From Wallemia ichthyophaga EXF-994 (Eukaryota > Fungi > Basidiomycota): a stretch of DNA of 32,000 bases. The notes beneath the pieces were generated by a model, which was given only the letters and a program-made list of their open reading frames with translations, was not told the DNA's origin and did no database searches. Shown here piece by piece: positions 7,119 to 30,511 of this stretch; position 1 is the stretch's first letter, and every line of letters starts with the position of its first letter. Location: the NCBI RefSeq assembly GCF_000400465.1, contig NW_008806302.1:1-32000 (forward strand), read 5' to 3'. The position numbers and the translations under genes were made by a program.

Positions 7119-8244
<1,126 letters not shown>

Positions 8245-10553: not shown

Positions 10554-12354
10554 ATGTCCAAGGATGAGCACAGTGAGTCTGGCGAAAGCTCAGAACTTGC
10601 AAGGAGCGAGGAGGTGCATGTCCTCCCAAAGAACAACCTCTGGCTATGTCTACCGGCTCTTCTCCTCGTGACCTTCCTTGGCAGCTTAGACAGCACAATA
10701 GTCTCCGTCTCTCTAAATACCATCTCCAAAGACCTCAACTCGAGCAGCCAGAGCGCTTATTCGTGGGTTGGCACCATCTATCTGCTGACCTGCACGGTCG
10801 TGGGGCCTGTAACTGGCAAAATGACGGATATAATGGGCATGAAGCCAATGCTATACTCTGGGATCGCACTGTTTGTTTTGAGCTCGGGACTATGTGGGGC
10901 TTCTGTGAGCATGAAGCAGTTAATAGCATTTCGAGGTCTACAAGGACTTGGAAGGGGCATGATGAGGGTCTCAACGCAGATAATCATATCTAATATTATC
11001 ACATTGCAGAATAGAGGTCTCGTGAATTCGCTAGTAGGGCTGGTGCACTCTCTAAGCAATGCCATCGGTCCACTGATTGGAGGAGCAATAGCAGAGCACA
11101 CGTCGTGGTCTTGGGTGGGTGCATTTTCTGTTGTATTACCCAATCTCACAACATCTCTAGTGCTTTTGGATCAATCTGCCCACATCGGCGATTGCTTTCA
11201 CAATGTTATTCTTCTTTCTCAACGTTAGCCAGCCTCCACACGCCTCATTTAAGGAGAAGTTCAACTCGTTTGACTACCTTGGTTTGATCTTGATTGTGGG
11301 TGGGGCTGTCTGTGTTTTGTTGGGCTTCTCCTTGGCGTCATCGCTGTCTTGGCAGCACGCGGCGACGATTTCCCTCCTGATAATTGGTTGGCTTTTGCTC
11401 ATCACATTTGGAATTTGGGAAATCAAAGCGGAGAAGAAAGGCGTGTCTGTGATGGTACCGCCGCGACTATTCAAATCAATAACACCAACAGCCATTCTGA
11501 TAGGATGTGCGGCGCATAGTCTGGCCTTTTACATTAGTGGATTTTACCTTCCATTGTATTTTCAATATGCCAAGATGAGTACGCCTACTTTTGCAGGATT
11601 ACACGTTATCCCATTTGCATTTGGGTCATCATTCGCGTCCATTCTGTATGGCTATTTACTGGCAAAATTTAAGCGTTACAGGCCTATTATATGGTTTTGC
11701 TGGATCTTTTTTCTCGTTGGAAATGCACTAGTTATCAACCTTGATGCCAAGTCATCGCTGGCAAAGCAGATTGTGTATTTGCTGGTTATGGCTGTTGGAA
11801 ATGGTGGTTTGTTCAGCACACCTCTCACAGCTTTACAGGCGTGTATGACGCTGAAGCAGACCAACACATCTACGTCTTCCTTCACATTCGTGCGTGATCT
11901 TGCGGGCACAATGGGTATCTCGCTAGGTGGAGTGATTATGCACACTGAAGCGGTAAAGAGACTGTCGAAAATTGACGGTGGGCAGCGTTTTGCTGACATG
12001 TCAGAAATTGCATCTTTGAAAGAGGCAGATATTTCGGAAAATCTTCGAATGTCAGTGCAGCAGGCGTATTCAAAAGCTATCTCGACGAACTACATATTCA
12101 CATCATGCGTTATAGCTGTAGGTTTCCTTGCGTCCCTCTCCATCAAGAAGTATACCCTGGATGTGAAAAATATCAAGGAAGGTGAAGAGGAGGAGGATGG
12201 CGAGGAGAAGGGTGATGGGAATAAGAAGGGCTTTAGAAAAGAGGAAGATGAGGGCAAAGGAGAAATTCATCTCCCAGCAACGACAGCATCGAGTGACACT
12301 ACGTTGGTTAAAACTAAAGACATGGAGAATCAGAAACCAAAGCAGCATTTGTAA
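10554..12354 (+). CDS. MFS drug:H+ antiporter, DHA2 (14-TMS) type, ~584 aa, intron 11115-11160
   Basis: LGSLDSTIV (TM1), YSWVGTIYLL, GKMTDIMG (motif A-like), LIAFRGLQG, IGPLIGGAI, SWSW|CFWINLP. A 46-nt intron joins the two long ORFs in frame. Confidence 0.9.
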
Positions 12355-12478: not shown

Positions 12479-13537
12479 TCAAAGACCAATGACACCTCCA
12501 CCAGTGTCGCAGCCATTCAAGACGCAAGTGCCTGCCGCTAATCTCTTGAGACCAACAGGGTTGTCGACCTTGAGGTTGCCGTTGTCTCTTTCGTGACCTC
12601 CGTCGATGAGGCCCAATACCCTGCGAGAGAGATCTGATTTGTCATCTTCTCCACGCACTTCAAGATCGAGACCCAACACCTCATCATCTGAACGCTTGTC
12701 GATGACTCTGAGGCCTATGGATTCCTCTGAGTACTGTTCATTAGCTCTAACGCCTATGTGAAGTTTATTATCGTCGTCGTGGTCATGAGCATCGTCGGTA
12801 AGCAAACCGTTGCCATCGACAGATCTCACACCAACGTGTGCCAAGTCAGGGCTACCGTCGTTGAGCAAAATGCCTCTCCTGCCAACATCCAGGGTAATTG
12901 CATTATTATGGTCGTTATGGTCGCTGAGGAGGCCTCCGCGTCTAAGGACATCGAGCAGCTCAGCGCCGTCGCCAGTGTCGCCAAGACCGAGTGCCGCACC
13001 ACGCTTGAGTAGACCAATCAAAGGCTCGTCATTGTGATTGCCGCTGTCGTTTAGGATGCGGCCAAAGAGACCGAGCGTTGAATCGCGTTCGCTATCGCCT
13101 TCTCCGCCGATACCCAGGATAGCGCGCTGGAGAAGATCAACGTCGATCGTCCCTGAAGAGTCAGTGAGGTCCTCCGTGCGTCTAAGCACATCAACGCCGA
13201 GAATATCGCCCTCGCCGTCATGACCGCCATTTGAACCGAGGATGCGCTTCAGGATGTGCACATCAAGAAGCCCATTATCGTCGTCGTGTCTTTTGAGCAC
13301 GCTGACTTTGTTGTTGGTGAGCAACTGCGCGGAGTAGTCTGGTTGACTGTCGTGCTGTTCGTGTTGTTCGCGTGTGTTCAAGAACAGAATACCCTTTCCG
13401 TCATCTGTAGGATTTTGAGTGTTGCTTGCTTAGAGTGACGCGCGCTGCCCACCCGTTTTGTCATCGAGGATGCGTCTGGTGGGCGCAGCGAGAATGGCTG
13501 CTGCACACGACGCGATGAGGGGGAGACGAAGGAGCAT
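12479..13537 (-). CDS. Secreted Kex2-processed repeat protein (KEP)-like precursor, 336 aa, intron 13452-13405
   Basis: Signal-like MLLRLPLIASCAAAILAAPTRR, spliced in phase 1 to ORF 12479-13381. Repeated units end in KR, RR or VR. Confidence 0.75.
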
Positions 13538-24284: not shown

Positions 24285-25667
24285 ATGATTGAGAAGAAAG
24301 TGCTAGTGATTTATACAGGTGGAACGATAGGAATGATTGCAAATGCAAATGGCAGCTATCAGCCTCACAGTAATCTCCTTGGCGACATACTCCGCTCACA
24401 GGCGCGATTTGACGATCCAAACGCCAGCTCGATTTTTTCCAACTTAACGTCCAAGCAGGCGTACGAGGTTTGGAACAGCATGCAAAAGAGTGGTGCTACA
24501 CCCGCGCGCCAGAAACTTACCGTGCGCTCCTCTTCACCATTCCAAGGTAGCGTGCCTGACGCATGCAGCGCACATACCCACACAGGGGAGCTGGAAACAC
24601 TGCAGACGCCTCGGACGTACCTGAATGGGTTCGAACACACAGTGCGCTATGTGATACTAGAGTATGCGCCGCTGCTAGATTCGAGCGACGTTGGACCGGA
24701 GCAGTGGGCGAAGATTGCCAGCGACATAGAGCTCAACTATAGTAATTTCGATGGATTCGTAGTGCTGCACGGGACAGATACCATGTCATACACCGCCTCA
24801 GCGCTTTCGTTCATGCTCGAGGGACTCGCTAAGAGCGTTCTGCTCACAGGAAGCCAGATCCCACTCACGCACATTCGCGCAGATGCCAGCGACAATATAC
24901 TTCACTCACTTCTCCTCGCGGGCACTGAGTGTGTACCTGAAGTGTGCATATACTTCAATGACCAGCTCCTGAGAGGCAACAGAAGCACCAAGGTGTCTAC
25001 GAGCGAATTTGACGCTTTTCGCAGCTACAACTACCCTCCACTGGCCAAGGTGGGCACGCGGTTGGATGTCAACTGGCCATCGGTCCAGCGCCAGTCTGGG
25101 GATGCATTGAGAGTGCACAAGTGTACGTGCATTTCCCAAACTGCTCCAGAAACTCTCACCCTCCCACAGCCCTCTCGCCGGAGATATGCGTCTTACGCTT
25201 CTTCCCTGGCCTCAAGGTACACCTCGTCGAGGCGATCCTGGCCGATTTGAAACGCGCTAGGCGATCAGCGCTCGTTCTGCAGTCGTTTGGAAGTGGTAAG
25301 TGGATGTTAGTGTGCAAAATACATGCTCAATGTGCTCTCCTGTCAGGTAACATTGCGAGGAACGATGCACTCCTCGCTAGCTTCAAGAAAGCCGCCGAAG
25401 ACGGCGTTGTTATTGTTAACACCTCCCAATGCCACAGTGGATCTGTCAACGCGGCTTATGAAAACGGCCGTCTGCTCGCTGAGGCTGGAGTTGTGCCTGG
25501 AAATGATCTGACGTCTGAGGTATGCGATTGTATGGTGTACAAACTTTCACCTAATCCCATCACAGGCCGCTCTTACTAAACTTTCTTATCTTCTCTCCAC
25601 CTCTCTCCCCGTCGAGCGCGTTCGTCAGCTCGTTCCTGTATCGCTCAGAGGCGAGGTGACGGAGTAG
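24285..25667 (+). CDS. Type I (cytosolic) L-asparaginase-like protein, 4 exons, no ankyrin tail
   Basis: VLVIYTGGTIGM and GFVVLHGTDTMSYTASALSF (both catalytic Thr motifs), LLTGSQIP, LLRGNRSTK, end ALTKLSYLL..SLRGEVTE. Introns 25123-25169, 25296-25346, 25520-25565. Confidence 0.92.
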
Positions 25668-29423: not shown

Positions 29424-30511
29424 CTAAGCACCATGTTCCAAGTCCCTATCTGACTCGTGTGGTTTGAGGAGATGATGAAGCTTGTGTAGATCCGAGAGAT
29501 GGTACGTTAGAGTCATCTGCGAGAAAATGTCACCCTTCAAAGAAAGCTACAAGGAATGTCAACACAACCCCACTGAGCCGAACAACCCACCATTTCAATA
29601 ATATCATCGAGCAGATGTGATTGTCCAACGTTCAACCCAGGAAACGAGCTGTAGTTGACAGAGACAACGTGGACATGAAATACGTCTTGAGTTTGATTGG
29701 GATGAAAATGTAGACAATGGACAAGTTAGCACTCACAAAACGTGGGCTGGTAATGCACAGCTAGCTTCACCTGACTCAGATTCAATCCCCAGTTCGACTT
29801 CAAAACATTACCAATCTCCCTGCGGATGCTCCTGAGCAGTGAGACATGGTGAGTGCGAAGATCTCTCAAACACTTGAGATTCATGTCTTTCACGACCGCC
29901 TGGAGATAGAGGGTGTTAAAGTCTTTCTTATCCCACTTGTAGTCGGCGGCTATGACGAATTCTTGACCTCTGTAATAGTATGTCTCGTTCTCTGCTTCGC
30001 CTGAAACTAGCGCTTGTATCCTTCTCACTGTTAATGACGGATGTATTATCAGTAAAGGCCCACCACTTTGTTTCTTTCTCAGGGAGACTATCGATGTATG
30101 GTTTAACGATATCGTTGTATTTCTGAGGCGTTTCTCTGAAGAGTGAGATACTCGCTTTAGAATACTTGTCCACGTGTTTCTGTGTGGCTGGATATATGAT
30201 CGTTACTTTCTGATTGTCTAGTTTATCGTTGCGTCTGTGGCTGTCACTAAGCAGGACGTGGTAAATGTCGTTTTGTTGAATCAGCTTGTGTGAAGTGGAG
30301 GTTTGTTGCAGCTGTGCATCCACATTCTCATCATCGAATGTCAGCTTCTCCATTATGATCAACGCTAGCTCTTTCTCGGGAGATATTGCAGTGATCGCGA
30401 TCCTTTTGGCCAGCGGATCTAGTCAATGTAAGTTGACACACGCTACGGTAATGCGTACAAACCATTATTAATAACCTTTGTATCTTTCAAATTCTTCAAC
30501 AGATTTTCCAT
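29424..30511 (-). CDS. DCS1: Scavenger mRNA decapping enzyme DcpS (HIT family), 5 exons
   Basis: DPLAKRI..LIIMEKLTF, NDIYH, KVTIIYPATQKHVDKYS..LFRETP, DYKWD, LYLQAVV, KCLRDL, HYQPTF|YVFHVH, GQSHLLDDIIE. Four introns of about 43-51 nt. Confidence 0.92.

Follow-up and report, generated by a model that had tools for sequence, protein, structure and literature searches.

The definition of KEPs (KEX2-processed repeat proteins) goes back to Le Marquer et al. (2019; PMC6339444) and Umemura (2020; PMC7329392); it asks for an ER signal peptide at the N-terminus, for KR, RR, or KK sites between the repeated segments, and for three or more motifs, identical or almost so, that lie between these sites and together cover at least 15% of the protein (PMC6339444). 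Six KEPs were counted in Wallemia ichthyophaga and six in W. sebi, and the survey figure for Wallemia, 6 KEPs per 282 secreted proteins, is among the richest relative to secretome size (PMC6339444); seven and eight were listed for W. ichthyophaga and W. mellicola, respectively (PMC7329392). In other basidiomycetes, KEP peptides have been detected by peptidomics (PMC9769878). Rep1 of Ustilago maydis is processed along the secretory pathway, and the resulting peptides, about 11 in number, are active on the surface of the hyphae (PMC3133707), and Ece1 of Candida albicans, the candidalysin precursor, is a Kex2 substrate in vitro (PMC2515848). Here, the gene J056_002854 of W. ichthyophaga EXF-994 is described, which lies in the first 32 kb of scaffold KE007252.1, and these 32,000 nucleotides are referred to as the window. 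Its product is best read as a predicted secretory precursor restricted to Wallemia, and we see an even chance that it is a kexin-processed polyprotein of distinct acidic peptides.

The gene occupies 13537..12479 on the minus strand and has two exons. The ATG at 13537 starts MLLRLPLIASCAAAILAAPTRRILDDKT, and the next in-frame TAA falls within the intron; removal of the intron joins this frame to a 300-codon open reading frame (ORF) that ends at 12479. The spliced product of 336 amino acids (aa) is an exact match to the annotated "uncharacterized protein" J056_002854 (EOQ98744.1/XP_009270394.1). An earlier note on this DNA had given the same span without mentioning the 48-nt intron, and all peptide strings that it quoted, including the C-terminal two-Cys unit, are found in the product. 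The composition is extreme, with Leu at 15.8%, Asp at 14.0%, Gly at 13.7%, and Arg at 7.4%, while Tyr occurs only twice. The gene and its product consist of the following features:

13453..13537, minus strand: exon 1, coding for aa 1-28 and base 1 of codon 29, with a signal-peptide-like N-terminus, APTRR, and the start of the first unit, ILDDKT
13487..13537, minus strand: signal-peptide-like segment MLLRLPLIASCAAAILA (aa 1-17), by direct reading
13472..13486, minus strand: propeptide APTRR, which carries the first dibasic site at its end
13405..13452, minus strand: intron of 48 nt, GTGGGC...CTACAG (GT..AG), with the in-frame TAA inside
12479..13404, minus strand: exon 2, including the stop codon at 12479-12481
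12542..13471, minus strand: block of acidic and hydrophobic units (aa 23-316) with nine more KR/RR sites
13289-13294, minus strand: KR/RR site, aa 66-67
13244-13249, minus strand: KR/RR site, aa 81-82
13178-13183, minus strand: KR/RR site, aa 103-104
13001-13006, minus strand: KR/RR site, aa 162-163
12938-12943, minus strand: KR/RR site, aa 183-184
12875-12880, minus strand: KR/RR site, aa 204-205
12692-12697, minus strand: KR/RR site, aa 265-266
12620-12625, minus strand: KR/RR site, aa 289-290
12542-12547, minus strand: KR/RR site, aa 315-316
12482..12541, minus strand: C-terminal peptide LAAGTCVLNGCDTGGGVIGL, whose two Cys are spaced four residues apart

The dibasic pairs are far more frequent than the composition of the protein would give. 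Against 20000 composition-preserving shuffles, the mature part contains 10 [KR]R motifs where 2.56 +/- 1.46 are expected (p = 5e-5), and Leu, Ile, or Val occupies the P4 position (the fourth residue before the cut) of 15 of the 24 Arg where 6.4 are expected (p = 1.5e-4). This excess agrees with the known preference of Kex2 for an aliphatic P4 (Rockwell and Fuller, 1998, cited in PMC2515848). When the unit ends are aligned on their Arg, they read hydrophobic, Asp or His, aliphatic, Leu or Gly, Lys, Arg, or Val, and then Arg, with an aliphatic P4 in 15 of 16 units, mainly Leu or Val at P6, and mainly Asp or His at P5; the unit starts are enriched in Gly, Ile, and Leu. All 10 [KR]R sites are placed at unit ends. 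Asp, Gly, Asn, and His abound in the loops between the sites, and the neighbours of His are of the Asp/Glu/Asn type 35 times against 20.0 +/- 3.8 expected (p = 1.5e-4). Thus, the unit pattern reported in the earlier note exceeds chance in both its dibasic sites and its P4 residues, while its count of about 16 Arg-delimited units is reached only if single Arg are included: ten of the boundaries are dibasic and six are monobasic.

The N-terminus, which was judged by inspection of the sequence, consists of MLLR (an n-region with Arg), a hydrophobic core of 13 residues, LPLIASCAAAILA, and A|AP with Ala at -1. All three regions of the signal peptide proposed earlier are present, and the ...A|AP... 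layout around the predicted cut (...AILA|AP...) is kept in W. hederae and W. mellicola. The propeptide varies in sequence, being APTRR in W. ichthyophaga and 12 aa with an NKR end in the other species, and has KR or RR at its end in all of them. A signal peptide followed by a variable propeptide ending in KR/RR is the classical layout of a kexin substrate, which J056_002854 would share on this reading of its N-terminus.

J056_002854 is a real, genus-specific gene under purifying selection. Its dN/dS (the ratio of nonsynonymous to synonymous change) against W. hederae is 0.11 in a codon alignment in which dS is near saturation, and synonymous sites are saturated against W. mellicola. Intron 1 is located at the same codon in the three species, with 47 nt in W. 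mellicola, 51 nt in W. hederae, and 48 nt in W. ichthyophaga. A word-indexed search matched only Wallemia, namely other W. ichthyophaga strains (98%), W. hederae (54%), and W. mellicola (51-53%), together with a read-set assembly fragment (74%). Similarly, an exhaustive profile search of 1.84 billion representative proteins returned four matches, all from this Wallemia family, and no relative outside the genus, so the family alignment could not be deepened. A profile of the C-terminal module found nothing at E <= 10 among 5.8 billion proteins, in a search that was insensitive, as it did not recover the family itself. Sequence-profile searches of Pfam, NCBIfam, and PDB with the product gave no match either; membership of an already known family, named in the earlier note as speaking against its proposal, was not found.

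The layout of the protein is modular, and it evolves through the gain and loss of whole units. Where the species differ in length, they do so by whole units that keep in register with the dibasic sites: exactly one unit, of 21 aa, is absent from W. mellicola, and W. hederae has the extra units GGHHDDGLIHLHIGKR and DGDDDEQEFSAYVKR as well as a duplicated SDDEIAGLDLE(IKR/LTRR). The dibasic state is kept in 17 of 19 orthologous site comparisons, with Lys/Arg swaps at P2, and four single-Arg boundaries of W. ichthyophaga (LLQR, VGVR, IGVR, and LEVR) correspond to RR or KR in a relative. Among 11 W. ichthyophaga protein variants compared, 12 positions are polymorphic and none of these is at a dibasic site. 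Each unit has its own orthologue with invariant loops such as DLTDSSGTID, DGSPD, and DNGNLKVDNPVG; the loop H.DH.N is likewise conserved between the species, and the C-terminal peptide, in which C.LNGCDTGGGV.G is invariant, is the most conserved stretch of the family.

Serial kexin cleavage is favoured because of the four-fold dibasic excess, the aliphatic P4, the unit-wise evolution, and the lack of a predicted fold. In such a pathway, the signal peptide would be removed first, Golgi kexin (Kex2) would then cut after the dibasic sites, and the basic residues would be trimmed by a Kex1-type carboxypeptidase. If only the dibasic sites are cut, the 5-aa propeptide is accompanied by ten products, which are 13-59 aa long and, once the basic residues are trimmed, have net charges of -1 to -9, so that about ten different, strongly acidic peptides would be released. 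The predicted peptides with dibasic-site termini include HDDDNGLLDVHIL and GAALGLGDTGDGAELLDVL, and a CxxxxC disulfide loop could form in the C-terminal product. Cutting may extend to monobasic Arg sites where P4 is aliphatic, for instance by yapsin-type proteases, which would raise the number to as many as about 16 peptides. The peptides would not be copies of one another, and each would be conserved separately, as in the polyprotein prohormones of animals or Candida Ece1. Divalent-cation binding at the cell surface is proposed as their most plausible activity since the His/Asp/Asn clusters are conserved, a suggestion that is speculative.

The units share a pattern and are not near-copies of each other. 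Mean similarity between 22-aa windows of the protein is well above that of shuffles (z = 5.9), and the best ungapped fragments are 31-46% identical, the ten best averaging 37% against 32% in shuffled sequence (p = 0.02). Profile-profile comparison with hhalign of quarters of the family alignment against each other was not significant (probability < 3%), so a common descent of the units is not demonstrable. No tandem repeats were found in the gene at the DNA level. Within the gene, repetition of DNA is confined to short recurring words, 15-22 nt in length, that encode HDDDN(G/K)L, DVLRR, and R-IL(N/D)D, and these are either leftovers of unit duplication or convergent motif coding. The pairs of words are as follows:

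12760-12781 and 13267-13288: short shared DNA words
12938-12952 and 13178-13192: short shared DNA words
13045-13060 and 13459-13474: short shared DNA words

When compared with KEPs, the Wallemia protein shares a signal peptide, multiple KR/RR between short segments that fill nearly the whole protein, and a restriction to one lineage, as is the case for most KEP types. It differs in that the segments are at best as alike as given above and are conserved separately, in that about six further boundaries are monobasic, and in the absence of STE13 dipeptides after the sites. The KEP assignment of the earlier note is thus borne out in its signal peptide and its dibasic sites between units, and falls short in the monobasic boundaries, while the units answer the demand for near-identity weakly at best. 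A pheromone precursor, which the note had also considered, finds no backing, as STE13 dipeptides (XA/XP) are lacking after the sites and the MF_alpha models of Pfam gave no hit. Rep1 is likewise a secreted pre-pro-protein of a basidiomycete; its peptides are described as longer, closely alike, and forming amphipathic amyloid fibrils (PMC3133707), whereas the Wallemia units are 13-59 aa long, diverged, and net acidic. No homology to Rep1, which the note had named among the KEPs, was detected, the profile and word-indexed searches having matched only Wallemia. The beta-hairpin, amyloid, repellent, and signalling roles put forward in the note would be guesswork.

By analogy, the closest layout would be that of a polyprotein of non-identical peptides such as Ece1 or the prohormones of animals. 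What is shared with Ece1 would be a secreted polyprotein whose dibasic sites part some eight to ten peptides, which are not identical, are comparable in size, and descend from degenerate repeats. No sequence relationship to Ece1 was detectable in the profile search, which returned only Wallemia relatives. Unlike Ece1, the peptides of Wallemia combine strong acidity with a high content of Gly, Asp, Asn, and His, which does not suggest membrane-active helices, and a toxin function is not indicated by anything in the protein. In animals, polyprotein prohormones and neuropeptide precursors are cut by proprotein convertases. They share with the Wallemia protein distinct peptides that are separated by KR/RR and individually conserved, together with a C-terminal peptide capable of a disulfide loop, but they belong to another kingdom and have no homology to it, and a receptor or signalling in Wallemia would be conjectural. 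J056_002854 is a plausible addition to a known kind of fungal precursor, one with diverged and individually conserved units.

Several points weigh against a kexin-processed precursor, and most of them are what makes an intact protein of the cell wall or matrix a serious rival: the residues after the sites, the hydrophobic context of the sites, the strand-like pattern, the borderline charge-hydropathy, and an AlphaFold run on only six sequences. Kex2 favours acidic residues at P1', P2', and P4', and structure is able to block its cleavage (PMC2515848). The residues that follow the ten dibasic sites are IL, HD, IL, TE, GA, GG, GI, SD, VL, and LA; half of the sites, five of the ten, are without the favoured acidic residues and are followed instead by Gly or hydrophobic residues (GAAL, GGLL, GILL, ILGS, and VLGL). 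The sites sit within the most hydrophobic stretches of the protein, where they may be buried if the protein is folded, and the alternating hydrophobic-Asp-hydrophobic run before Arg would also fit a beta-strand of a folded repeat. Charge-hydropathy, at 0.442 with the boundary at 0.446, places the protein on the line that separates folded from disordered, and the AlphaFold result, with a mean pLDDT (predicted local distance difference test) of 28, no residue above 50, and no confident fold, is weak negative evidence because the alignment had 6 sequences. Moreover, since the units are only weakly alike, a KEP pipeline may not count them as repeats; the kexin gene of Wallemia itself is only implied, by PMC6339444; and J056_002854 is absent from the complete table, with protein sequences, of genes regulated between 10% and 30% NaCl (PMC3849046).

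According to this rival, the product is an intact secreted acidic repeat protein from which only the propeptide is removed, at the first KR/RR. The other dibasic motifs would be structural parts of a loosely repeated strand-loop unit whose loops of Asp, His, Asn, and Gly bind cations or water on the xerophile's surface. We hold this to be possible and on the whole unlikely. The alternation of hydrophobic and Asp or His residues before Arg, together with the G-x-L-L unit starts, would allow paired strands; whole units are conserved between species with their loops (DLTDSSGTID, DGSPD, DNGNLKVDNPVG, and H.DH.N); His/Asp/Asn clustering is significant; the Kex2 P' residues are suboptimal at half of the dibasic sites; and aliphatic residues, at 27%, are more abundant than is usual in a disordered protein, while the failure of AlphaFold may be due to the shallow alignment alone. 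However, a four-fold dibasic excess would be odd in a protein that passes the Golgi uncut, and the indels follow the units in register with the dibasic sites. Hydrophobicity has no constant period, none exceeding shuffles in Fourier analysis, by which a regular solenoid was ruled out, and neither a predicted fold nor a match to a solved structure or family was obtained. Scans for calcium motifs (PS00018, DxDxDG, GGxGxDxUx, DxDxDGxxDxxD, and Pfam) gave no match, and EF-hand, RTX beta-roll, and thrombospondin type 3 proteins were ruled out as no canonical binding loop is present. Leucine-rich repeats were ruled out by the lack of a Pfam hit and a misfit to the consensus. A glycosylphosphatidylinositol anchor was ruled out by reading, the tail past the possible omega region being only 8 residues. 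The protein also has no Ser/Thr-rich region as in wall proteins and only a single N-glycosylation sequon.

The product was also weighed as a precursor of peptides that are made by ribosomes and modified after translation (RiPPs), whose cores would be modified by tailoring enzymes, for example on the two-Cys peptide or by methylation through the methyltransferase encoded two genes away. A signal peptide with KR-flanked cores is indeed the architecture of ustiloxin-type precursors (PMC7329392), the CxxxxC tail is invariant, and a class I methyltransferase gene is located two genes upstream in all three species. Nevertheless, a RiPP precursor, as mentioned in the earlier note, is very improbable: no gene for DUF3328/UstYa, tyrosinase, cytochrome P450, or other tailoring enzymes lies within 10 kb on either side in the three species, the surroundings are made of housekeeping genes, the cores are unrepeated with 2 Tyr in 336 aa, where ustiloxin/dikaritin-type precursors have a highly repeated core with Tyr, and the adjoining major facilitator superfamily (MFS) transporter gene is missing at the W. 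mellicola position. A non-functional region, whose pattern would arise as a side effect of composition or of an opposite-strand gene, has a next to negligible probability and is effectively refuted by the dN/dS value with its saturated synonymous change; in-frame indels, the conserved intron, and the same gene order in three species speak against it as well, and plus-strand ORFs in the region do not exceed 84 aa.

The earlier note had raised the possibility of acidic peptides adapted to high salt. Asp and Glu together account for 18.4-18.8% of the residues in each of the three species, two of which, W. mellicola and W. hederae, are less halophilic (W. mellicola much less so), so a special high-salt adaptation is not indicated, and the gene is outside the salt-regulated table. 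The locus tag, the accession, and three sequence fragments of the protein are absent from the supplements of PMC3849046, and no paper mentioning J056 tags was found in a literature search.

Gene models of the family differ at the introns. In the model annotated for W. hederae (P0002, 420 aa), intron 1 at L003:10107-10157 is read through, its 51 nt being in frame and stop-free (GTGTGT...ACTAAC...CAG), and 17 spurious residues, GVYYSTRSPLPTNSPSP, are added in this way. The same artefact is seen in P0007, and P0021 of W. mellicola has a 10-aa insertion at that spot. W. hederae has a second intron of 48 nt (L003:10425-10472) that splits the codons of a dibasic site (GVGVL|KR), and no intron is present at this position in W. 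ichthyophaga and W. mellicola. As P0007 and P0008 end or read through there, the second intron is common to other Wallemia lineages, and it is a gain or loss within the genus. In the 332-aa variants P0004 and P0005 (W. mellicola strains), ...DLELRDLSDDEAVIVRRVLGL... is swapped for ...DLELRDLMTMKLVLGL..., a change by which one dibasic site is lost. Either a true polymorphism (frameshift or indel) or an artefact of the gene model may lie behind it; if the change is real, one cutting site would be dispensable.

W. ichthyophaga, W. hederae, and W. mellicola have the same order of genes around J056_002854. The gene for RNase H2 subunit B is divergent from it and, in W. ichthyophaga and W. hederae, the MFS transporter gene is convergent with it, and its neighbours encode RNase H2B, a ubiquitin-conjugating enzyme, POM152, histones, Tel2, and RPL27A. 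The MFS transporter at 10554-12354 on the plus strand (L004:11184-12984) has 368 aa in EXF-994 and 584 aa in another W. ichthyophaga strain with identical coordinates, so that the model of EXF-994 seems to be truncated. Both this transporter and a gene for a purple acid phosphatase are missing at the W. mellicola position. In GCA_004917865.1 (L005:1909-7672), the NmrA-like, ubiquitin-conjugating enzyme, and POM152 genes are merged in one model of 1723 aa, an annotation merge. A divergent histone pair at 7119-7535 and about 7887-8244 encodes a 138-aa histone-fold protein (Pfam Histone) and one of 103 aa, which we take from their lengths to be H3 and H4, respectively. The other housekeeping genes of the window, Tel2, RPL27A, an asparaginase (24285-25250), and a DcpS-like ORF (29928-30362), have no link to J056_002854.

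W. ichthyophaga is, to our knowledge, the most halophilic fungus, and its extracellular biology has been little studied. If the protein stays intact, J056_002854 would simply encode a putative lineage-specific acidic secreted protein. If it is processed as proposed, it would be a clear fungal case of a secretory precursor that encodes numerous distinct peptides, each conserved individually, in place of copies of a single one, and searches for KEPs that are based on repeats would miss precursors with diverged units. A more far-reaching possibility, to which we give a low probability, is that this one gene yields a fixed cocktail of at least ten different His/Asp-rich acidic peptides together with a C-terminal peptide looped by a disulfide, each of them conserved since the divergence of the genus. 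The gene would then be a fungal counterpart of the multi-hormone precursors of animals and not a repeat-amplifying KEP, and its products may serve as secreted chelators of cations or metals or as surface modulators that are needed at very low water activity. The predicted processing would, if true, provide a defined set of short acidic His/Asp peptides whose binding of metals and cations can be tested at high salt.

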